Source of the DNA: Parasitella parasitica NRRL 2501
Taxonomy: Eukaryota > Fungi > Mucoromycota
Assembly (NCBI GenBank): GCA_025201805.1
Contig: MU619350.1
Location: 35,704-99,703 of the forward strand
Reading direction: 5' to 3'
DNA length: 64,000 nucleotides
The translations under genes were made by a program, and so were the position numbers. The notes below the pieces were generated by a model. It did no database searches. It saw nothing but the letters and a program-made list of their open reading frames with translations, and was not told the DNA's origin. Below are positions 1 through 14,660 of this stretch, one piece after another (the stretch's first letter is position 1; each line of letters opens with the position of its first letter).

Positions 1-1666
1 TTCCATGTTCTTGATGCTCTGTCTTTTTTTGCTTGGCTTGCTGATGACTTTGATACCCTTGCTGGGAAATGTGCCCAATTGCAATCCATTGCCCAGTTGG
101 ATCTTGGCCAATACCTCGACCCGTTTTCTCTTCTCGTCGGCGTCATTGATGTACAGCTGTTTGGACACACATCTTCCAGAGACGGCCGTGTTGGCACCAG
201 CAGCACTGTCAACGATAGTTCCATCGGATGTGGACCATTCCAGGACACCAGTCTGGTTGATGGTTTCTCCAGAGATATGGATCGTTAGTTTAGGACAAGT
301 TAGAGTTTGCGAAGGCGACTGAAAGAAGCTGGATTTCTTTGCTTCAGCTTTGTCTGAAGCATTGCTGCTGTTAGTCCACCAATTTGCACCCTTCAAGATG
401 GTAGTGGGAGGGGGGCACAAAAATCTAAGATTGTCGTCATTCATCAGTTCAGACTGCTTAGTGCGTATTACAGTGCTGATTAGCTTACCTTTTCTCAGTT
501 CCGTAGCTCTTTTGTGCTACTCTGCTTGTTAACACCATGACCGTTCTTTCACCCGTAACAGGCAATGATCTCTCTTGATGATCACGTCGAATCAGATAAT
601 CCTGAATTAGTGGTTTCAACGAAGAAGCAGTAGTCTCGCCTTGAATGACACGAGCAGTAATCAAGCCGCTCTTGCTATGATTGGTTGTCTTTGCGATATC
701 CCAGTCTTCCTGCTGTTGCTGTTGCTGCTGTTGCTGCTGTTGACCAAATAATATAGGTTCAAATCCCAAAGAAGCCGGCTGCATTGGAGTGATAGGAGGA
801 GAAGGTGACATGGAAGAGAGAGAAGACGAACCCATGGTATTTGAAGGGGAAACAGGGGACAATGAATTGGCACTACGCCTCTGTCGCTTTTGCGCTTGTG
901 TGTGCATTTCCTTGACCTCTTGCTGCTCCAGTAACCAATCGGCCATTGTGTTGATTTCGTTAGTGATAGCCGATGGAGGGATTGAGTTGTTTAAATCATG
1001 GTGATTTAGCCTGAACAGATCATTTCCTGTAGTGATGGAGGAGGCGGCGCTGTTGGAGTCGATGAATGACATGTCAGAGATGATGGTAGACGCATCGTTG
1101 AGGTTGTTGCTGGGGGACGACGAAGAACACGTCGATGCGTTCTCTGCAACGAGTGCGTCCAGGAAGCTGGTGGAAAAGAAGTTGGATGAAGTTGTGGATA
1201 GAGTCGGTGATAAAAGGGATGCATAATGGGGGTCGTCTTCTCGCAGGGACAGTGTGCGTCTGTGGACGGGCCTTTCCTCGGGAGGATTCATATGGGCAGT
1301 CGAGTTCAGCAGCATCTGAATGTCGTCCCAGGGCGAGTGCTCGTTTGCTGTCATGATGTTGAGGTCCTTTTGCAAATCAAACGAGTGGTAGTCCATCTCG
1401 CCAATGGCAACTGAATGGCGGCGGGAATTGCTGCCAGACAACGGAGTGGTGTGCTGGTCAAAGAACGAGTCAAAGTTGAAATGGTGCGGCTGGTCGTCTA
1501 CGTGCAATGCATTTGCTGCTGTGGAGGGCGAGGAGGGCGACGAGTATATAAAGTCAGACCAGGAGGAAGAGGTTGTCGGCATGGATGAGCTGAGCAATCT
1601 GTCGTCTGCTGGCTGCTTTCTCTTTCTGGAGATGTCTTCTTGAGTGTTTGTGGAAGTTGTGAACAT
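1..1666 (-). CDS. CSL (CBF1/Su(H)/LAG-1) family transcription factor, 3' part outside the window
   Basis: ATG at 1666 and intron 425-488 give ...RVAQKSYGTEKR|FLCPPP...GRCVSKQLYINDADEKRKRVEV...FPSKGIKVISKPSKKRQSIKNME, the LAG-1 DNA-binding signature. Long Ser/Gln-rich N-terminus as in fungal class F2 CSL proteins. Confidence 0.92.
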
Positions 1667-4558
1667 TTCGTACCAGCGAAAGTAAGTTTGCAAAAAAGCG
1701 AAAGCTCTGCGTTGATTGAGCAGGAAATCAAGGGCCTTTTATAGCATAGCTACGGGTGGCACAAGATGTAGTACTGCTAAAACGAATGCCCTATTTAAGC
1801 ATCATGAACCCCACATTTTTTTTCTGGTTTAAACCAATCAAGTCCATGGCGCATTTCGCTTGCTCCGGGTTTCTTTTAAAACTTTTTACCGTCCACATGA
1901 TGCAAAACTAGTTTTCCCGCCCTTCTCCAACCGAAGAAACGGGTAACACCACTGGCTGCTAACTGTGTATTGCTTGCGCAAGTAATGTATTATCTATAAA
2001 CCTTAAAGTGTCATCATCATCCGCTAGCATACATGTGTGTTTTTAGAGACAGAAATCGGTCCACATACGTTGCACTATTTGTTTAGAATGTGCATTATTT
2101 ACGCCATGACAAATGCGTGTAGAGAATACAATGTTTGAGACACTTTGGATGTTCCATTCGCCAAATGTATACATCATCTCTCTCTCTCTCTCTCTCTGCT
2201 ACATGTCTCGTTACACCAACACTAATAAAATGTGTAAAAAATCGAGCTAATATCAGGATTGTTATAAATATAGCAGAGGCTTGGAAGACTAGAAAGATAA
2301 TCAGCATCATTGCTATCATGTGTGCATATCTCTTTACATCACCAATATGTCCATAAACATTGCATTTCCTGTCCCCTCATATTTCCTATTATGCAAATCA
2401 ATGCTGCATTTCTGATTTCAAATGTGCATTGCTCTTGGCTCAAACACACAATATACTTGCTCGTATACGTAGTATTTGTGACACACATGACATATTTAAC
2501 CCTGCCTTTTGTTGTGAATTGATCTGATCTGTTGAGTTTTAAAGTCTCTTTTCATTATCATCATGGCAAAACAACCACTCCTCCCCCCCCCTTCTTTTTC
2601 AAAAGAGCCATAACACGAACACATTAAATTAGGCTTTGTGTTTAATTTCTTTGTACCTTTGTATATCTGAATCTATAGTCTCTGTGATGTGGCATCGCTC
2701 CGTCTCATAGGCTGATGATAAACTCTAAAAGACCCAATATTCTATAAGCAACACAAAGCGCAATTACATTGGGTCAAACCTTAGTACAAACCAAATTAAA
2801 CCCAAATGTTAATTTGTCCAATCTAAGAAGTATCCATTCCGCTCTCTCGTCTGAAACGAGTACCAAATACGCTACGATATAGATGCTATATTTTGTGCTA
2901 TATTGTTGTGTTAAAGAAAAAGTTTTAATTCGTCTTTTTAATAATACTTCTGCATCGTTGTCTATAACGTGGATGTCTTCAGACATCTCCTGATCTATTA
3001 GCTGGCTAAATTAACAATAGTATGAAATAGAAAACGCTTTCCTCTCTTTAGCTACAATCACATTTTGAATGGGAGGTTCTGAAAAATAAAAATTTCAAAT
3101 TCGTGATTCCTTTCTAGCTAAATCATGCACAGTATGCGTAGCTCCAACCTCCTATCCGCCAATTCTGTTTGTTGACTTCCGAGAGGTCGGCCTTACACTT
3201 ATGTCGTTACCGCCCTACTTTGAGATACTATTATACCATTTCAAGAACAATGCAGCGTGCAGTTTATTTTTGTAAGCGAACAGAAAACGTGCCAAAGATG
3301 TCAATTTGTAAAGTAGCCGATTCCCCTCTTATCATTAATTTTGACACATGAACACTAGTTTGNNNNNNNNNNNNNNNNNNNNNNNNNNNNNNNNNNNAAA
3401 AAAAAAAAAAAAGAAAAAAAAAAGACAAATCAATTTGACATGGTCATAATATGTAAACAAAACACACATGTAGGAGCTTATCTGCCGTGCAGAAGAATCA
3501 ACAAAAAAAGGTAATTCTAACTTTTTAATACAGTGGCATACAAATGGGTCCAGCCCAACTGGTAAAAAGAAACGGCTTGTATATTTGAATTGTCATATTT
3601 GCATCAATTTAGTTGCTGGCACTAACAAGATGATACCTCTTTCTGTAATCATCAATACCGGTAGCATTCTCTGCACCTGTTTCCGCAGTGTTTTATTTTG
3701 GAGTCTTTTTTATCTTTAGAAGTATACAATAGAAAACTGCGATTCCCCTGCCTAAGAAGAAAAAAAAAAAACTAGACATCAATGGTGGAATAACGCTTTT
3801 ATGTAGCAGTATGAGCGGCTCGCCGAGCTACTATATATTCTAGTTTCTTTGTCTTTTTGACAAGGATCTTGCCTGACCGAAATTGGAAAACAAAGAGTCT
3901 ACCAACACTGATCTGACCACTACCATCTCTCTAATCGCTTTAAGTCTACATAAAAAAAGACTTGATATTCTTATGGATCGTGGAGGGGGTTTTTTTTTGT
4001 CAAATAGTCATTTTTTCATTGTTTTACTATTTTAATGTATTGGCTTGTTAGCTGTATTATAAGCTTCAAAAATTGAGGGCCTTCATGACCAAACTAACCT
4101 GTCAAAGCTGTCGAAGAGTTTAACAAAGCAACTCAAGACGTAAAAAAAAACGCTTGCTCGCATAAATTTAAGTGTCTCATGGTTTAGAACGCTTTACTTT
4201 TTGCTTTTTATGCTCAAGGCCGACTCAATTTGACGCTTGCTACTTGATGAAATCAACCTTCTTTGCTCAGATGTAATCTTTATAACCATAACCATCAAGT
4301 CCTGCTTCTAAAACTGGCTGCTCGTAGTTGATCTTCAAGACTGGGATCAAGATTGGAACGCATCATCTTGCTAGTCTTTCCCTTTTCAATTCTTTTCTTG
4401 CTTTCGTCACAGCAATTTGGTATGGCAAACAGGTTTAGTGATTTCTTGAAAGTAATCAAGTACATAGACTATGTCGGATTTCAATGTTGCCACCTGCACC
4501 ACTAGAAGTTGTTTAGCAGTTCAGCAATATTATATTAATCCCAACCTAAACTGTTAGA

Positions 4559-5147
4559 GTGGGTATGCTATTTTACTTCTGCGATTAGGCGATTCTCAGA
4601 GAAAAGAATTACAAAAAAGCATTATTGTATGCCATTCATGTAAAAAGGGAAGTTTACAATAGAAGAACTCATTCACATTATTATTTTATTACTATAAAAA
4701 TAATCACTATTGTTGAAAAATAATTAAGACTATTGATTGTCAGATCGTTTAATTGAACTTGTTGATTCTATCTGCATAAAAAAAAAATACGTATAAAGTT
4801 ATCAGCAGAAGAAAACAATGCTTTTCATATAAAAGCGCATTTAAAAGCATACATGGTTTGATACAGAGCAATATAATAAAAAATGTTTTACGCTTGATCA
4901 ATACCTTCATGATCTAGGCTTTCTGAGAATAACCTGATTTCCAGTGGGCCATAATTTCGATCGTGAATAATGCCACATATTTTTGCTCATAACTTCTGCT
5001 AAAATGATTGTAGAAACACAACCTAACTTGGAAAACTTAGCGTCAGCTTAGCGCTATCTGGCAACAACATTTGCATCTAAGTTTTTATTGCTACCTATCA
5101 ATTTATCAGAAGTTATCAAAAATTTTCACATAAGAATAGCATACCAC
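4559..5147. mobile_element. Putative MITE / non-autonomous DNA transposon remnant
   Basis: Imperfect terminal inverted repeats: GGTATGCTATT-TTA at ~4562 versus TAAGAATAGCATACC at 5131-5145 (11 bp perfect core). AT-rich, non-coding interior. No TSD verified. Confidence 0.35.
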
Positions 5148-6910
5148 AGATATAATCTGCCATAAATTTAGCCATAAATTTAAGATAAGAATACCGGCCT
5201 TTGCCAACTAATTCTGGAAGTTGAATCTCATGCCAATTCCAATGTTGATATAAAAAGACTTTAAGAAACCAGAGCCAGAGCAATCCTGGCTTCCTTTTTC
5301 AAAAATTAATAAAGGCCCTACTGCGTTCTCCGTGATATAATTGCTTGTAGTCTCTTAAATTAATTGCCTTTGGGAAGAATTGTTATTCATATCGTAATAA
5401 CTCTCAAGGAGACCATGATAATGTATGTCCAATGATGTGTTGTTATGCTTGTCGAAACAGGAGTAGAATAAAGTCTGTTTCAAATCAAGAATATTTCAGC
5501 TTATCTGTAACACATGTTCATGTTATTGACAAATATTGTGAGGTACTATCAAATCAAAGACGAGTGGCCTTGTAGTATAATATTCCATTGTGCCCTGTCA
5601 TGAATATGATGTTACCTATGCAAATTACTCTTACCGATTAGTATTTAAATAAGTCACCAAAAATCTATGTAGCTGTGAAAAAAAAAAGTATAATAAATAG
5701 CAGATGCAAAACTGTATCTTTAAATGAAGTAACCTCAAGTTCTCGTATCTCGTTAATGCAATGTTTTCTTTTTTAAGCTTTTCTGATTTTCGATCTTGCA
5801 GATCCCAACAAATTGCATGTAATCGCTGATAGGCTATGATAAAAATAAAAATAAAGCCTATTTTATTTCTTATGATAGTGAATATATGGAAGTTTAATAC
5901 AAACTATACAATCTTTTGAGATAAAAGAAAACAGCAGTATGATAATATATGAATTTACAGATCATTTTGATTGACATCAATGGCATCTCCAAGAAGTTTT
6001 TGCGCGTTTTGCGCTTTGGTCATGCGTAAAATATTGGCTATGTGACAAATGAATCTTGACCAGTTGAAAAAAAATTTGTTTTCCTTGTTTTTAATTAGGA
6101 AATGAGCACTTTGTTCCCTGATTGACACATTCACAAACTTTTTCGGAAAGAGTGTACTGTTGGGTTCATTTTGAAAAAGTATGTGATAAGATATGCTTAA
6201 CATAAACATACGTAATCAGAAATAGATTATCATTAGTGGAAAAGAGTGAAAAGAACCAGAGAAATAACATTGCGTATTGATAATGGGTCGATTAACAATA
6301 TTTATATACTATTCGAACTGAGGAAATTGTGAAGATAAGGTGTTAGGTGATAAGGTCTGGGTAAGCATGACAATAATTATATCTAGCGCGAACATGTCAT
6401 GCTTGTGCGTTCGTGATCTGATCTGCAACGGATCGAGTCTTTATTTTACATCACGAAAAAATATGCGTTTATGTAAGAAAGTTTCTCGGAACATTGAATT
6501 GGAAATGTAGTAATATCTGATTATGTCTTGGCAATAAAACAAGATTTACATAAACTANNNNNNNNNNAAAAAAAAAAAAAAAAGCACAATATCACATCTA
6601 ATGACGTGCAAAGAACCATATCGAAGTGTTCTTCGAGCTATATGTATTGGACTTTTTTCTTGTGGATGCAGGCTAATGCTTTTCGAATATTTCAGTTGTA
6701 GGGTATGTGGTATTTTATTCCAGTCCTTTCTTTTTTTAAAAAAAATGTGCGTAAAATAAGAATATAAGGTCATATCGAAGAGGCAGGTGCAATTGAGATA
6801 TAAAATAAAGATATGATAAAATAATTCAGATGTTTGGACAAAAACAAGCTAATGATTACCAAAAAATTATATACAGTAAGCTAAAACCAATTTCAGTTAG
6901 CACGCACGCA

Positions 6911-7230
6911 CTACAAGAGGGAGTGCCGCTGATCTTTCCCAATGGTTTGATGAATATTGGATCGGATAGTGGCCAATATCGCTGTAGGCTGTATGGGTGT
7001 TTTATTGAAAATAAACCTCATATGTCCAAGCCATATTTGAGAGAGTATGATAATGAAAATTCGATATGTTGGAAAAATCCTAGGGACAGAAGAGACTCTT
7101 TGATAACGTCTATAAAAGTAGTAGGCCATAGGAACTCAAATATAATGCCCTGCCAGATTTTCTCTTTTGATGGACAATCGAAGAGAAGATGACTGGGAGA
7201 ATCGTTCTTGAGCAAGAAAGCTAGACAGAG
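6911..7230 (-). mobile_element. Degenerate 3' end of an L1-like non-LTR retrotransposon ORF2 (zf-RVT region)
   Basis: Frameshifted pieces DSPSHLLFDCPSKEKIWQGIIFEFLWP and IWLGHMRFIFNKTPIQPTAILATIRSNI...* match the HLLF-CP-K--W zinc-knuckle and W--HW-FIF tail typical of L1-clade ORF2. Confidence 0.7.
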
Positions 7231-7627
7231 AGGAATTCCAGCCCATAATGATAGTTTTCATGGAAACACATCAAATTAACTTGTCAGTATCAATAATTAA
7301 TATACAGCACAATATCGTAAGTATATGCATGAATTTTCTTATGCACCGCATCTTTGATTTAGATCTTTATGATTATTCAGTAGTACATAAAAATATAGAT
7401 ATTTCTCTGTCCACTCTTCCACTGATCACAGTAACCACAAGATTAAATTTATGTTACAATACTAGCCATAACCTTAAACGACATAAATTCCCATTAAATT
7501 GAATTAGGGTTATTTCGCACCCACTTTTTAAAATGCCTAAATCTCAAAACTAATGTGTCAGTTCAATTCCCATAGACGAGCAGGTGTGTGCATAAAGAGT
7601 TTATTTTAACAAAAATATAAAAAAAAT

Positions 7628-8404
7628 TCAAGCAAACTATAATATCACAGAAGAATTAGACACTTTTGTTTCGCTTCTTCTCTCTTTTTACATTACCTGA
7701 GCCAAATAACTTTCGGCGACATTTCTTGCGCGAGTATTTACACTCAATTTCATTTCAGAGATCTCTTTGTCAACTTCCTCCATGAAATGAACGATGAAAT
7801 CAACCAGCTTGTGTTTGTACATTTGTTCGGTATGGTTGTTTGTGATTAAGAAAGAGATATCATATCCCTAGTTGAGACGTTCAGATAATCGAATGCATTC
7901 TTTTTTTTTTTTTTTTTTTTTTTTGGCAAAGACTACTTACGTCCACTGGCTTTCTACGTAAAATAACAAAGTTCTCAGCTCTCATCATCAAAAAACGAGA
8001 AAATTTATGGCACAATATATGTTCGAGGTCATCGGCTTGCTTAATCTTGATGCTTACACGAACAGAGTTGACTGAAGGTTCAACGAGTACTTTTTCATTT
8101 TCGTTACGGCTGATAACTAGAGGGTTCATCAACAATTCTTTGGATTTCCTAATGCATTTCTACGTATTAGATGTGTTGCTTAACTGCTGCAACAATGCAT
8201 TTACCCTGACTCAATTTCGGGTGTGTTGTGTCTTTCTGCTACTTGAGAAGAAAAGTTCTCCAAGCATAGAGCAGCCGTCAGAGTTGAGCGAACGGCTGTA
8301 AGATATGGACGAAGCGTATTAGACTAAATTAAATAAATAAACATCGCGTTATTTTCTTCCATTTGTTTCTAATATTCTTCGGTTTATATTGTAATATTTA
8401 CCAT
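7628..8404 (-). CDS. ARPC4: Arp2/3 complex subunit 4 (p20-Arc)
   Basis: Spliced: M|[33 protein letters not shown]...[25 protein letters not shown]...[17 protein letters not shown]|[10 protein letters not shown]...[23 protein letters not shown]. Four introns; the first exon is ATG only. Confidence 0.96.
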
Positions 8405-8994
8405 AACGTTGGACTGAAGAAGAAAAAGGGAATAAGTTTTACAACCTCTGAACTTTCGTCACTTGTTGCACACACACACATAATGATTTACTCGGCGTTT
8501 TAAGATCAGTGTTTACTATATCAATCTTATCTAAAAGATAGCATCGGTATGTAGGCAACATTTGATGTATTTTAGACATGATTCAATAATAAAAAATGAT
8601 TCGTTTATCCAGTACAAGTTATGTAAACATATTTTAAATATAAGTCTAGTATACATATAGGAAATATATATACGCATACGATGTAGATTTCATTGATTTC
8701 GAAAATAAACAGAATCTGTTGTGTGGTTTTGCTTTGCAGAAAGGAAGAATGTAAAGAGTAGCGCACGTTCTTCATTTTACCGAAAGCAATTGAATGCAAT
8801 TTTATATCCATACAGAAAATATTTTCGCTTTTGTTGTTATTAATGTTGCAATTATAACCATGCTATCATGTTGTCAGACATTATGCTGTTGTCAAATTCC
8901 TAGTATTATATACAATTCATATAAAAAGAACCAATTTTTACACCTATTTGCTTTTTACAAAACTAATCATTATCACAGCAATATAACACAAAAA

Positions 8995-10272
8995 ATGCGT
9001 TTCTCTCTTGCCATCATCTCCTCTGTTGTGTTAGCCCAAGCTGCTTATGCCTCATCCTCTGAATCAGCATCTGCCTCGTATGCCTCGTATGCCTCTGCAT
9101 CAGTATCAGCATCTGCACTCGCTGAGCCCTCGTCTGCCAGTATTGTTGATACCCTTGAAAAGCGTAATTTGTTTGATTACATCAAAAAGGTAATTTTTGC
9201 TGATGAAGAGAGCTCTGCTGAAGCTGCTTCTGCGTCTGCTTTTGCTTCTGAATCAGTTGCTGCTGATGCCTACTATCTCGCTGTCCCTTCAGCCTCTGCC
9301 TCTGCCTCGGCTGCCGCTCCTTCTCTTCACAAGCGTAATGGCAACATGCAAGACATCCTCGCTTCCATTGAAGATTATTCCCTTGGAGCTGATGCTGTTC
9401 CTTCAGCCTCTGCTTCTGCTTCTGCCTCTGCCTCTGCATTGGCTTCGGAAGCTCCATCCTTCAAATGGAGAAACCGTGCTGCTGCTCGTGTCAGTGCTCA
9501 AAGTGCATCTCGTTTGGCCTCTGTCTCTGTCTCTGCCTCTGCCAAAGCTACTCCCTTGGTTAAATACAACAACTACTACAAGCGTTCTGTAAATGAGGTC
9601 GAAAGCGCCTCAGCTTTAGCCTCAGCCTCAGCTGATGCCTTAGATCTTCTCTTCGAAGCTGCTGCTTCTGCATCAGAAGATGCTTCTGCCTCTTTTGCTT
9701 CTGTTCCCGCTTTGCAAAGTGCATCTGCCTCCGAAGCATACGTCCCTGTTTACATGAAGCGTGATGATGCTGATTTCTCTGTCTCTGCTGCCAGTGGATC
9801 TGCTTCTGTTTCTGCTGCAGAGCCCTCTGCCTCCGCATCCGCCTCAGCTTCTGTTGTTGTCCAGGAAGAGATGATCTACATGGTCAACAACTTCAAGCGT
9901 GAAGAAAGTTCAGCCTCTGTTGTCGATCCTGAGGTCGATTCTGCTTCCGCTTCTGCGTCTGCGTCTGCTTCTGCTTCTGTTGCTTTCAAAGCTGCTGCTG
10001 TCATGGCCTCTGCTTCTGCCTCTATTGTCGAGCCTGCTGCTGAATCCAACTTTGCTGCTGATGCCATCGTTGCCGACGTTCAATCACAAATCGAAGCCAT
10101 TATGGAACAAGACGAAGCCTCTGCTATCGATGAAATCATAGAAGCCGACAAAGCAATTGATGCCCCTATTGTCGAAGACCAAGTGGCTGAGAATGATGCT
10201 GACAACTTTTGGATCGCTGACGCTCAAGCCGAAGCTCAATTCAAGGGCTACGACTGGAAAGAAACCAACTAG
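8995..10272 (+). CDS. Secreted Ser/Ala-rich protein with five KR sites (Kex2-processed repeat precursor candidate), 425 aa, intronless
   Basis: AAAAATG start at 8995; signal peptide MRFSLAIISSVVLAQAAYA; LEKR, LHKR, YYKR, YMKR and NFKR separate (SA)n-rich modules; biased codon usage (GCT/GCC/TCT). Confidence 0.85.
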   Translation: MRFSLAIISSVVLAQAAYASSSESASASYASYASASVSASALAEPSSASIVDTLEKRNLFDYIKKVIFADEESSAEAASASAFASESVAADAYYLAVPSASASASAAAPSLHKRNGNMQDILASIEDYSLGADAVPSASASASASASALASEAPSFKWRNRAAARVSAQSASRLASVSVSASAKATPLVKYNNYYKRSVNEVESASALASASADALDLLFEAAASASEDASASFASVPALQSASASEAYVPVYMKRDDADFSVSAASGSASVSAAEPSASASASASVVVQEEMIYMVNNFKREESSASVVDPEVDSASASASASASASVAFKAAAVMASASASIVEPAAESNFAADAIVADVQSQIEAIMEQDEASAIDEIIEADKAIDAPIVEDQVAENDADNFWIADAQAEAQFKGYDWKETN

Positions 10273-10454
10273 AGATTTTTTTTTATAATACAGCTTAGAT
10301 TTTTTTTTTAATTATAATTTACACGAATGCCTCCACTTTTTTTTTTGTTACAAAAAATTTACCCATCATTAAATTCAACCAAAATACATACAACATTCTC
10401 TTTTATCTCAATTTCTTCATTTTTATTAAAATATACTAGTTTATCTCAAAGTTT

Positions 10455-11172
10455 TCATGTGGATGATGCTTGCTGAAAGCCATCCAGAATCGTTTTCATG
10501 GGAAAGTACCGCTTGTCAGGCACACGGTGTTTAAACACGATGTTTAAATTGCAGTCAATGATAACAACAGATCGATTCATTTCCAATGTTACCAAATTTA
10601 ATGATTCAAATGCTGTTGAAATTAATCTGTCCGCATTATCGCTTGCTAATATGAATTTTGGTTCAAAATGTAAGCTTTGTGAAGTAAAATTGGGCGTGGC
10701 ATAGGCTGCATGGATTTGCGCTCGGTCTTGAGTCATGGCAATAGGTATAGCACCGAGTTTTATGAAATAATCATAATGTTCTCTATTCAAGACGATTAGC
10801 CGCGAGCATTTGAGTTTTATGTGCACACTTTTACTGTATGTGGGCCAAATCAATTTTTGATTGATGTGTGCTGGGGATTAAATTTATCATAGATGGTGAG
10901 TATATCTAGAAATGGGCACTGAACACTCTCACTTACAAATCGTACCCGCAGAAGAATAAGACTACATATTGTCCTGCCTGAAATGCATCAGATAGCTGGA
11001 ACTGCATTACTTGGCCCTGGTAGAAAATCAAACATTGAAAATTATGCGCACCTGGCTTGCTTCTGTTGGCGATTTTTAATTTGGAGTTTACTTCCTCGCT
11101 CAAAGCGCCGAGTTCGTCCACACACACTCGATATCTCTTCAATGAACTACGATTAGCACCCAATTGTTGCAT
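10455..11172 (-). CDS. AhpC/TSA (peroxiredoxin-fold) protein lacking the peroxidatic cysteine
   Basis: Two introns (~10871-10936 and ~10782-10834) give GQYVVLFFCGYDFTHQSKIDLAHIQEHYDYFIKLGAIPIAMTQD...FILASD...MNRSVVIID. This aligns by eye to Prx1 [20 protein letters not shown]...PLVSD...FRGLFIID. Confidence 0.75.
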
Positions 11173-11489
11173 TTTATATTAATAAGAAGAATAAGAAGAA
11201 AGAAAGAAAGAAAAAGAGGTCTGTTTTATTGTGAGTTCTTTTTGCATAAAAGTGTGTACTGTGTTACATGTTGGAAAAGTTCTCACATCATTTTATCACA
11301 TTAGTCCAGCAGGACGATATATTCATCCTCTACTTCAAGGAAAACGACATTGTCAGGGGAGCAGAGAAGCTGCTTTCACCTTTCCAGCTGTTTGATGGAA
11401 CGATCGGTCGTCTTGGGAACAGCCTTGTTTTTCCTAAAAAAAAAGAACTAAAAACTAATGATATTTATGAAGTTTGCTGGCTAAAGACA

Positions 11490-11600
11490 TACAGCATGAA
11501 ATCGTCGTCCAAATCGAAGATATGCAATCATATGCCTGTAAAGACCTCCAATAAAAACCAAACAGCTTGCAAGCACATGCATTTGTTGAAACGTTGGTGA
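11490..11600 (+). pseudogene. Degenerate SWIM zinc-finger fragment (MULE transposase-like remnant)
   Basis: MQSYACKDLQ*NQTACKHMHLLKR resembles the SWIM CxC...CKH motif; interrupted by a stop/frameshift. Confidence 0.45.
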
Positions 11601-11999
11601 AGAGACCTCATCGTATATGAAGATAAAAATGTTCTACAGCCAAACCACAAGGGTCAGCAAGTGTAAGCTTTCTTCAATAATACCTACACTTATACCTTAC
11701 TGTGCAAAGAATGCCGCAAAGATACTGCTTTTAGCAATGTTCCTCCGCACCAAACTGCTCATACCAGGATAGACAGCTTAATAATCAACACCTCATCTGT
11801 TGTAAATACTTTCATGTTTGACAACAATATCTACACTTGAAAATGGAGATCAAATCCAGGTATTAGAAAGAGCTAACAAGCGTATTTTCAGCTATTACTG
11901 ATACAGCTCTGAACAGTAATCTCACCACACGAAGACAAGCCATTAAATAAAAATAAAATATATTTGTATAAATATAAACGTTATCGAATGATACAATAT

Positions 12000-14171
12000 T
12001 CAAGTTCGTCTTATTTTGGAAGGAAATAAGAAAATTACATCTTCGTCTTCATCTAATTTTCGCTTTCTCTCGTCGGATTCACTCTTTTCTTCTACAGGTT
12101 TGGGAATCGCATTCATCAGTTTTAAATTATCATCGTGGTCCTCGTTTGTATCGCTACAGAATAAAAAAAAAAATCAGCGTTTGCGTCTAGTCATCCGTCT
12201 ATTTCAGACTTACAATGCTTCCAAAACAAGATCCACGTCTTTGTTGCCAGCATCCTGAGTAACACGTAGAATCGTACCCGGTTTCAAGCTAATGTCGCTC
12301 AATGTCGAGTCAACACTTTCATCGAATTCAATGTCGTAAATCATGCGGCTGCCCTCCATAATAGCCACTTCATCCTCAACCATACCAGCTCCGCCCTGCT
12401 CCTGAGGCAGTAAAATGACCTTTTGTATAATATCCTTCAATGTAGTCTTGTCAAAGTCAACTTTTACTGTTGCACTTCTTGATCTGCAAACATTGCAATT
12501 CGGATTAGGTTCCCCATTTGCTTCTTGCACTAATCGAGGCCCGGTTGTCAGGTATGTTCTAGTGTTGTTTTTGATATTTCCACGCAGAATTCCGTACGCT
12601 TTTATGATGACGATGCCTGCAATAACCGCATTGGTGGTTGCAATAGCTGGGATGATATTTCCAGCCATGGCTATACACAGTCAACCCTTCAGTCAGACAA
12701 CCGATAATTATGTTGTGCCAACGGACTTACATTTGACATCAAACAGGCTTTTGGTTGGAATATGGAATGCATGACTTCTCAGGTTAGATGCTGCTGTGAC
12801 AAAATCCATGGCATCTTCGTCGTCCTTATCAAAGGATAAGATGGCGTCTGGCTGTGTACATTTCTCCTCTAGATAGCGTGTAGCTAATCGAATGGCACTG
12901 TCCTTGAACATTTCGAAATTCTCTTTCAATGTCCAAACTTTTTGATCAGCAAGTCCTTGCGTCGACGTTTCTGCTGCTGATACCTCGCTTTCTAGTGTAT
13001 CGTAGTCCAGTGGCGCAGGCGCTTTTCGACTTTTCCACATGGATTCCATGGACAAAAGCCGCTCGATGTCCGATTTGTAGACCTTGTTGAATACGATTTT
13101 GGCATAATCCGCTGATCCAACGGCTTCTTTGATTAGTTTTAGTTCGGCAGTTTCTCTTGACAAAGCTTCTAGCTCCATAGCTAGTAAAGTGTTAGATCTT
13201 GCAGCTTTACGTTTGGCATTTATTTATCTTACCATTTTCCTCAGAGATGTCTGCTTCAAGAGCCTCTTCATCTTCAGAATTGCCAAACAATTGACTAGCA
13301 TGTCATGTTAGAGAAATTGCACATTTTTTCGTCAACTTTCCCCACCTGAATAAGAAGCTCTTTGCCCAAACAATGCAATGAATGGGCGCACTGGGTGTGC
13401 TTCTAATGGTGCAAACTGGGTACGTAGTAGGTGTAGGCTTGGGCTGACAGTCAAAGCATTCAGTCTCGCCCTGTTCAAAACATGAGCAACACACATGTGG
13501 AAGATGTGAATCTACTACAAACCTTTTTAATGACATATGCTTGGCCAAGATAGCCTTGAGTACCGGATTCAACTAAAGGCACGTCTGCTGCCAGACACAT
13601 GGCATTGACATGTCGACGAGCATCTAATATTCAGTTAGGGAAGCTGATTTTTTTGCTCACTCTGTTCCGCTTGACTAACCCAAGTTATCCAACGCGTTGA
13701 GAACCATTGTGAACTGCTTGAACCATTGGATGTTGTATTGGCTCTCCTTAATGTTGCCTTGGAGAGATTCAATCTTGGCTGATGGGTTGAATCTTTTTGC
13801 CGATTCCTTGGCAACCTACATGTCAATCGACTTAGTATCAGGTCTTGTTTTTTTTGCTGATGCAATTATACATGTGCTTTTGCTTTCTTGACATGTTGAC
13901 GCTGAAACAAAAACTGACGATTCAAGTTGGAGATATCAATAGTGTCCAAATCAATCTGGTGCAAGCGTGAGTGTTGGCATCTTTCAGAGTAGAGCATAGC
14001 ACATTAAGTGATTACCACAACAATATCATTGAAGCCTGACATGACCAGGTCTTTCAGCAGCTCACATCCAATGCCACCGGCACCGACTAAAAGAACCTTG
14101 CTGTCTGCAACCTTGGCATACAATTCCTTTCCGAGAACTCGAATATTGTATGCTTCTCTGCTACCTGCCAT
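12000..14171 (-). CDS. UBA2: SUMO-activating enzyme subunit 2
   Basis: [15 protein letters not shown] nucleotide-binding motif; [12 protein letters not shown]; active-site [21 protein letters not shown]; [19 protein letters not shown]; [14 protein letters not shown]; CxxC. Multiple introns; ends ...[17 protein letters not shown]. Confidence 0.95.
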
Positions 14172-14660
14172 AATGGGTTGGATTTTGCAAGTTGAACAGA
14201 GCAACAGACAGTAAAGGCAAGACAACATTTCAAGCGCGTTGTACAGTCACGAAGGCAGGGCAGACTTGCAATGCATTTCACGCATGCAGCATCATCAAAT
14301 ACCGTACCAAAAGTTGCGACCTGAAAAGAAAGCTCTTCAGCTCGATCTCATCGATCTTACTCGGGAATTCCCCTCATTGTGCTGTTTAGAGGTTTCTGTA
14401 GCATGCTGCTATGACTCATGTCATTCAACATGTCATCAATGAAACACCGAAGATTGTGGGGCTATAATACAGTACTACAACGATAGATTCGCTTTGCTAG
14501 GCCCATAGTCACAGGCTAATCAACACGTTCTTTCAAATGAAAAAAAAAAAAAAAAAAAACCTACCCTTCTTCCTCTTCTTTCACATCAGAACCATTCAAT
14601 TTTTTTTGTATATATTCACATAGATATAGGCATAGAAAGTTGGTTTAGAGGATCAGAATA

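Follow-up and report, generated by a model that had tools for sequence, protein, structure and literature searches.

A single-copy Mucorales gene encoding a candidate kexin-processed, multi-fragment secreted precursor

Introduction

Mucorales – important opportunistic pathogens as well as food and industrial moulds – are fungi whose secreted peptides are little known. Prohormone-type precursors of animals and fungi carry conserved peptides flanked by dibasic sites and set among variable acidic spacers, and the Pir/Hsp150 proteins carry one Kex2 site. A gene of Parasitella parasitica NRRL 2501 invites comparison with such precursors, having five dibasic Lys-Arg (KR) sites behind a predicted signal peptide. 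It is located at positions 8995-10272, on the forward strand, of a 64,000-nucleotide stretch of contig MU619350.1 (positions 35,704 to 99,703; assembly GCA_025201805.1), and this whole stretch is referred to here as the window.

The closest described systems are found in other fungi. Candida albicans Ece1p is a protein of 271 amino acids (aa) with seven KR sites, on which Golgi Kex2p does the cutting and Kex1p the trimming (PMC5784256). Rep1 of Ustilago maydis is a secreted pre-pro-protein that is cut by Kex2 into many wall-located peptides of tens of residues and one large fragment (PMC3133707). Predicted Kex2-processed repeat proteins (KEPs) number 357 in 38 strains of Mucoromycota, or 9.15 per strain, and are mostly genus-specific (PMC7329392, PMC6339444). 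In the definition of Le Marquer et al. 2019, a KEP has a signal peptide, no transmembrane domain and at least four fragments after cutting at KR or RR, with a repeated motif present in at least three fragments and making up at least 15% of the protein; in that of Umemura 2020, three or more tandem repeats lie between Kex2 sites, each of at least 8 aa and none over 100 aa (PMC7329392, PMC6339444).

Here, we compare the window gene with its relatives and with these systems. We lean, with some reserve, towards the reading that this single-copy Mucorales gene encodes a kexin-processed, multi-fragment secreted precursor, an Ece1-like or prohormone-like polyprotein. Its secretion, cleavage and glycosylation, and the activity of its fragments, we infer from comparisons of sequence.

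Results

The gene and its relatives

The gene is a single open reading frame (ORF) of 425 codons plus a stop, without introns. A HMMER search of 1.84 billion representative proteins returned two matches only, both unannotated: P0001 (395 aa, E=1.2e-10), which aligns through the extreme C-terminus, and P0002 (179 aa, E=1.1e-5), which covers the N-terminal part. A look-up of the 90% cluster of P0001 added P0003, a near-identical allele on a 34-kb genomic contig (L025). Within this scope, in which the window's own assembly was the sole eukaryotic genome searched, the family so far comprises four sequences from three loci (the window, L025, and L019, which carries P0002). The window gene is single-copy in its own genome (32.8 Mb, 450 contigs), where profile and C-terminal searches match the gene itself only.

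The preliminary description recognised no characterised family, and neither did the searches. Pfam gave none for the window protein, SRP1_TIP1 (PF00660) and PIR included, at E values up to 10; word-index protein searches, whether run with the entire protein, region 343-425 or a three-sequence profile, recovered P0001 at most, candidates being swamped by Ser-Ala (SA) words; and a PDB profile search gave no match. Exact-match queries of the contig and cluster collections with the window protein also came back empty, entries from its own genome possibly being excluded there. Metagenome scans with back-translated motifs and with the C-terminal pattern found no locus, a blank that says little as the P0001 contig evidently lies outside that collection. 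In the ESM Atlas, feature matches were at noise level (<=0.82) and structure matches were uninterpretable at a predicted local distance difference test (pLDDT) of 0.29. By these comparisons the family appears to be an orphan and lineage-restricted one, unrelated in sequence to Ece1p.

The coding sequence and its signal peptide are as follows.

8995..10272, + strand: coding sequence of the single-copy gene; relatives align with it from Met1 to the final residue
8995..9051, + strand: signal peptide, aa 1-19, with a predicted cut after A-Y-A; the same layout is present in P0001 (…AVFA) and P0002 (…AVYA)

Over 9182-9838, ORFs of 63-131 aa, rich in Leu, Gln or Arg, are open in four of the five other frames (two per strand), as might be expected if the window ORF were itself a chance frame, held open by a low-complexity GCN-TCN repeat, and no gene. 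Start codon, signal peptide, non-repetitive motifs, stop position and synteny are, however, common to the homologues, and a promoter block is conserved. Between P0001 and P0003 there are 16 synonymous and 8 non-synonymous codon differences and no indel (pN/pS 0.14), and no difference falls in a dibasic pair; the orthologue is under purifying selection. The contig of P0001 is transcript-sized (1,288 nt, with a 1,188-nt coding sequence and flanks of 21 and 79 nt), which suggests that it is a transcript, in line with the start at MRFS. The conservation data thus effectively refute a chance ORF, to which we give next to no credence; the gene and its architecture are real, and the overlapping pseudo-ORFs are repeat by-products rather than genes.

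Two other gene models were rejected. An upstream-extended ORF of 492 aa, starting from 8794, would place the signal peptide in the interior of the protein, and the relatives all start at the MRFS Met. A putative intron at GTAAT (9188) is contradicted by the orthologues, which align uninterrupted through this position.

Architecture of the precursor

The N-terminus, MRFSLAIISSVVLAQAAYA, has an Arg in the n-region, a hydrophobic core and A-Y-A at -3 to -1. The protein contains 110 Ala, 85 Ser (46% Ser+Ala) and no Cys, and its mature part of 406 residues has a net charge of -34. KR pairs occur within LEKR (aa 54-57), LHKR (111-114), YYKR (194-197), YMKR (253-256) and NFKR (299-302), and hold half of all Arg residues. 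Five KR are found where 0.31 are expected, and since none of 20,000 shuffles of the mature sequence reaches five (P<5e-5), the sites are not a chance outcome of composition. Once signal peptide and KR are removed, six fragments of 36, 55, 81, 57, 44 and 123 aa are left, five of them with a net negative charge (-4 to -23) and one at +2. There is no transmembrane segment past the signal peptide, the top 19-residue hydropathy (1.53) belonging to an Ala-rich stretch with one Lys; nor is there a glycosylphosphatidylinositol (GPI)-type tail, because the last 20 residues are hydrophilic (hydropathy -1.10). The signal peptide, the five KR sites with their flanks, and the lack of Cys and of a GPI tail all stand as the preliminary description gave them.

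No N-x-S/T sequon occurs in the window protein, P0001 or P0002, although Ser makes up 17-20% of the residues and several Asn are present. By chance the window protein should contain about 2-3. The absence may reflect avoidance of N-glycosylation, but counts this low do not allow a decision.

Conservation of the dibasic sites and the motifs beside them

The window protein, P0001 and P0002 are collinear module by module. The sites and the conserved motifs are listed here in order.

9160..9165, + strand: dibasic site 1, LE-KR, aa 56-57; LEKR is invariant in 3/3 homologues and followed by [ND][LF]FD[YF]
9166..9201, + strand: amphipathic head of fragment 2, NLFDYIKKVIFA, aa 58-69; hydrophobic pattern kept in 3/3
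9331..9336, + strand: dibasic site 2, LH-KR, aa 113-114; HKKR in P0001, and in both followed by [ND]GNMQ[DE][IV]LAS
9337..9378, + strand: head of fragment 3, NGNMQDILASIEDY, aa 115-128; shares 7 of its first 10 residues with P0001
9580..9585, + strand: dibasic site 3, YY-KR, aa 196-197; HYHM-KR in P0001 and RHY-RR in P0002
9730..9762, + strand: tail of fragment 4 with dibasic site 4, SEAYVPVYM-KR, aa 246-256; S[QE]AY[VL]PVY[YM][KR]R in 3/3
9895..9900, + strand: dibasic site 5, NF-KR, aa 301-302, then EES; exact KREES match in P0001 (KKR-ML-KREES)
10207..10269, + strand: C-terminal motif FWIADAQAEAQFKGYDWKETN, aa 405-425; 17/21 identical to P0001, the best-conserved stretch

Site 1 is followed by NLFDY… in the window protein, DLFDF… in P0001 and P0003, and NFFDF… in P0002, and site 4 reads SQAYLPVYY-RR in P0001 and P0003 and SQAYVPVYY-RR in P0002. 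After site 2, NGNMQDILAS in the window protein corresponds to DGNMQEVLAS in P0001 and P0003; P0002 has FEKR at the matching place, with weak flank conservation and without the NGNMQ head. A basic, aromatic stretch precedes site 3 in all three proteins, with weakly conserved flanks in P0002 (HYRR) and the weakest alignment of the five sites. At site 5, automatic alignments place the region differently, and P0002 breaks off before it. As aligned, sites 1-4 and their flanks are clearly conserved in the orthologue and site 5 is probably so; P0002 retains sites 1 and 4 with their flanks, and has dibasic pairs where sites 2 and 3 would fall. The preliminary description had proposed a secreted precursor delimited by dibasic sites, and had chosen conservation of these sites in orthologues beforehand as the point on which that proposal should stand or fall; in this it held.

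Two further features of the orthologue bear on the sites. P0001 has 6 KR against 0.58 expected from its composition (P<5e-5), and its sites 4 (YYRR-A-KR) and 5 (KKR-ML-KR) are doubled, as expected if selection acts on cleavage itself. Identity between the window protein and P0001 is 81% (17/21) in the C-terminal 21-mer, 41% from -8 to +10 of the KR sites, and 28% over the rest of the protein, a value inflated by chance Ser/Ala matches. The C-terminal motif follows the pattern FWIADA.AE.QFKGY.WKE.N, of which there is no second copy in the P. parasitica genome.

Site conservation also bears on a reading in which the product is an uncleaved or N-terminally matured, Ser/Ala-rich and O-mannosylated wall or mucin-like glycoprotein, the first KR at most removing a propeptide in the manner of Pir/Hsp150, and the others being shielded or serving another role. 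Fungal Ser/Ala-rich wall mannoproteins of the Srp1/Tip1 and Pir/Hsp150 classes have a similar composition, and the window protein is likewise secreted by prediction, probably O-mannosylated, disordered, and free of Cys and N-glycosylation sequons; site 1 is moreover the most strictly conserved of the five. It differs from these classes in having no Pfam match to them or to other families, no GPI-type tail, no Pir repeat, and five dibasic sites rather than one. Conservation of the site 4 motif in all three proteins, and of at least two more sites with their flanks in the orthologue, two being doubled there, is hard to explain without cleavage, and a KR that lies exposed in a disordered protein of the secretory pathway is the standard substrate of kexin. 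We regard such a glycoprotein as unlikely.

The head of fragment 2 raises a different alternative, that of a membrane-active peptide precursor, similar to Ece1/candidalysin or to antimicrobial precursors, in which NLFDYIKKVIF would be the active peptide and the acidic remainder a neutralising pro-region. The head lies directly after the invariant LEKR and is amphipathic in all three homologues, each having a helical hydrophobic moment of 0.51-0.54, and Ece1p offers the precedent of one active peptide among non-identical KR-delimited peptides. However, no conserved site ends the head; where the window protein has KK (aa 64-65), the relatives carry KE or KN. Only in the window protein is the head net +1; in both relatives its net charge is acidic (DLFDFLKEIFGM, NFFDFFKNMFYD). 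Fragment 2 as a whole has a net charge of -5 to -11, so that this is not a conserved cationic peptide. We find a membrane-active role very doubtful.

Predicted structure

AlphaFold2 (AF2), run with the three-sequence alignment, gives a mean pLDDT of 43, with helix or coil of low confidence and no strand. A single part is better defined.

10045..10158, + strand: acidic helix of the C-terminal fragment, aa 351-388, the sole part of the AF2 model at pLDDT 71-85

This helix contains an IVxDVQxQI motif that is also present in P0001. Weak helices are modelled at the head of fragment 2 (pLDDT about 57) and the head of fragment 3 (118-130). All five KR sites are in regions below pLDDT 50 and are predicted by the model to be disordered and accessible, and the ESM Atlas model of the window protein is likewise disordered.

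The Ser-Ala runs are not conserved

The preliminary description saw an (SA)n core in each segment and took these silk-like modules to be functional cores. Uninterrupted runs of at least three units are indeed present in fragments 2, 3, 5 and 6, five in total, with the SA stretches of fragments 1 and 4 being shorter or interrupted.

9289..10023, + strand: span with the five (SA)n runs of at least three units (aa 99-106, 137-148, 278-286, 316-328 and 338-343); none in P0001 or P0002

The DNA of these runs consists of imperfect GCY-TCT hexanucleotide arrays (80-100% matches). Since neither P0001 nor P0002 has any (SA)n run of at least three units, the alternating pattern is not conserved, and the idea of functional silk-like cores falls with it; where the runs would be, the relatives have poly-Ser, Pro-rich, Glu-rich or His-rich filler. 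Judged by this comparison, the runs are lineage-specific low-complexity filler. About 20 other (GCN-TCN)n loci are present in the P. parasitica genome, none of which encodes a signal peptide with KR architecture. An unrelated and very acidic ORF of 637 aa on the + strand at C20:40500-45000 contains the repeated module …INIDL..LRVASASAS…KQAGLLGDLLDDL…; its modules are separated by poly-Asp, and it has no KR sites.

Likeness between fragments is due to low complexity alone (pairwise z-scores of 0.9-5.3 against shuffles), and the proposed kinship with repeat proteins such as Rep1 or alpha-factor is not borne out. The suggestion that the fragments begin with X-Ala or X-Pro substrates of a Ste13-type enzyme fares no better. 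The two amino acids following the five sites are NL, NG, SV, DD and EE in the window protein and DL, DG, EE, HL and EE in P0001, so that position 2 is never Ala or Pro in either; the alpha-factor-type signature is thus missing, though DPPIV-type genes are present in the genome.

A further reading supposes that the fragments are surface-active or amyloid, repellent-like peptides, which coat aerial hyphae or spores as stand-ins for hydrophobins through (SA)n beta-sheets. A signal peptide with KR-delimited segments of 36-123 aa is a Rep1-like architecture, the class I hydrophobin domain was not found in the window's own genome (a weak negative), and canonical hydrophobins are missing from three Mucorales that were surveyed (bioRxiv 10.1101/2022.08.19.504535). 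The window protein is no hydrophobin itself, having none of the eight conserved Cys and no Pfam match to the domain. However, the loss of the (SA)n runs in both relatives leaves the beta-sheet SA core unconserved and this hydrophobin-substitute idea without its main sequence argument; the acidity of five of the six fragments disfavours hydrophobic surface assembly; and the fragments do not repeat a single amphipathic unit and have no strand in the AF2 model. Rep1 itself has 12 similar repeats that give amphipathic, amyloid-fibril peptides, and the window protein resembles it as a secreted precursor delimited by Kex2-type sites; its fragments, in contrast, are acidic and alike in unconserved SA only, and do not form a Rep1-type series of similar amphipathic peptides of 34-53 aa each ending in KR. 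An amyloid coat of this kind is improbable.

With its predicted signal peptide, six fragments and lack of a transmembrane domain, the window protein agrees with the general description of a KEP. Four of its fragments contain (SA)n runs that reach 8 aa or more, and the orthologues lack such runs; SA low complexity is the sole element that its fragments share, each conserved motif is unique, and there is no Ste13 signature. It may formally qualify as a KEP, and then only through low-complexity SA, and is in substance a non-repeat polyprotein.

Promoter region

Two elements upstream of the start codon were noted.

8887..8900, + strand: 14-bp block TGTTGTCAAATTCC, about 95 bp 5' of the ATG; invariant at 3/3 loci
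8920..8928, + strand: TATA-like element TATAAAAAG, about 70 bp 5' of the ATG; read from the sequence, with putative function

The block recurs at about 5888-5901 of L019 and about 9980-9993 of L025, at about 95-110 bp from the start codon, and the upstream sequence around it is otherwise poorly conserved (mean column identity 66%). The window contains one copy of it, as does the 32.8-Mb genome as a whole, and it is probably a gene-specific cis-regulatory site. The consensus of CSL factors, a gene for one of which lies nearby, is GTGGGAA; the block was considered as a CSL site and rejected for its mismatch to this consensus. AT-rich, TATA-like stretches are found at the matching place in both L019 and L025.

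Genomic context

Gene order is common to L025 and the window, and consists of a CSL-type factor (LAG1/BTD), ARPC4, the window gene or P0003, and a ubiquitin-activating E1 (UBA-E1). Two of these neighbours are located in the window as follows.

7881-8135, - strand: ARPC4, in synteny with L025
About 12200-14200, - strand: UBA-E1, in synteny with L025

The flanking genes are 65-75% identical in nucleotide sequence (window 1-13200 was compared with L025 3900-14500), and the CSL gene of L025 is the nearest to that of the window; shared gene order and this CSL relationship together make P0001/P0003 the positional orthologue. The interval between CSL and ARPC4 in the window (about 1700-7800) is AT-rich (32-36% GC) with no long ORF, and has a run of N near 6555-6570. 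At L019 a CSL gene also adjoins, with ARPC4 absent between, and this CSL is the outgroup to the other two. Both L019 and L025 come from run SRR25833176, and their CSL proteins are about 63% identical. As read from these sequences, P0002 would be either an older paralogue lost from the window genome or a copy from a second species in the sample; the L019/L025 pair would represent either an old segmental or whole-genome duplicate that the window genome has lost, or two species sequenced together. P0002 is truncated where its gene call ends at a 51-nt GTAAGT…TAG intron (L019:6518-6568), shortly before the contig ends; exon 2 (L019:6571-6630) continues in the same acidic, Ser-rich style.

Elsewhere in the P. 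parasitica genome there are four CSL paralogues of Su(H)/LAG1 type (at C114, C1:221290, C6:195470 and C84:104910), and the one adjoining the window gene is the closest to the CSLs beside the homologues. Two kexin P-domain loci score above the Pfam cut-off. About 20 CotH loci are present (e.g. C75:59583 and C72:50505), including a tandem pair on C13 (C13:296713-300387); several copies have in-frame stops, and could be pseudogenes or contain introns. The CotH family is, to our knowledge, confined among fungi to Mucorales, and the Mucorales origin proposed in the preliminary description is consistent with these loci. UstYa/DUF3328 (PF11807), a mark of ustiloxin/dikaritin-type ribosomally synthesised and post-translationally modified peptides, was not detected genome-wide, a weak negative as control genomes were silent too.

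Discussion

Conserved sites with abutting motifs, and variable acidic spacers between them, suggest a layout that resembles prohormone- or Ece1-type precursors more than a repeat precursor. In the pathway that we favour, the signal peptide would lead the protein into the endoplasmic reticulum, and the mature 406 residues, Cys-free, acidic, Ser/Ala-rich and by prediction intrinsically disordered, would be fully exposed, with the dibasic sites open to Golgi kexin because of this disorder. A Golgi kexin-type convertase would cut after the five conserved sites, a Kex1-type carboxypeptidase would be expected to trim the basic residues, and six differing, non-repeat fragments of about 36-123 aa would reach the wall or the medium. 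The functional parts would be the conserved fragment ends, namely the NLFDYIKKVIF and NGNMQDILAS heads, the aromatic AYVPVYM tail, and the C-terminal helix with FWIADA..QFKGY.WKE.N; the (Ser-Ala)n runs would be fast-evolving spacers derived from the GCY-TCT arrays, likely O-mannosylated, and not functional cores. The fragments would then be extracellular or wall-associated and acidic, probably O-mannosylated, with their function in the conserved ends.

Like Ece1p, the window protein has a signal peptide followed by non-identical, KR-separated peptides and is lineage-restricted. Unlike it, there is no sequence similarity, either in Pfam or among the 1.84 billion representatives, and no conserved toxin-like cationic amphipathic peptide; Ece1 peptides are hydrophobic and about 30 aa long, whereas the window fragments are 36-123 aa, acidic and Ser/Ala-rich. 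The likeness to prohormone precursors is that conserved motifs abut conserved, partly doubled dibasic sites, with fast-evolving acidic low-complexity spacers between, and the difference is that no short peptide is bounded by sites at both ends, the motifs lying instead at the ends of long fragments.

Several points weigh against a kexin-cut precursor. We infer both secretion and cleavage in P. parasitica; the conservation statistics rest on three independent homologous loci, with ambiguous alignment at sites 3 and 5; and the fragments, at 36-123 aa and mainly of low complexity, are unlike typical bioactive peptides. The conserved motifs adjacent to KR could serve a role other than cleavage, and heavy O-mannosylation of the Ser-rich flanks could shield some of the sites.

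A more speculative proposal, to which we attach little weight, is that the fragments, together with the genome's other Kex2-type precursors, make up a surface layer without hydrophobins, long sought in Mucorales, on aerial hyphae, sporangiophores or spores. In such a layer, and with the same small likelihood, the aromatic and amphipathic ends might drive assembly while the O-mannosylated, acidic, Ser-rich spacers face the wall.

Numerous Kex2-type precursors were already known in Mucoromycota, and the window gene alone settles no open question. It also carries a caution, since 'silk-like' low-complexity modules can be lineage-specific filler, and automated KEP pipelines may wrongly count proteins containing them as repeat precursors. 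What the gene provides is a well-delimited, lineage-restricted candidate kexin substrate in which the new element is comparative support for the cleavage sites that goes beyond the counting of motifs, and which points to the conserved fragment ends and the C-terminal 21-mer, rather than to the Ser-Ala runs, as the parts that would matter.

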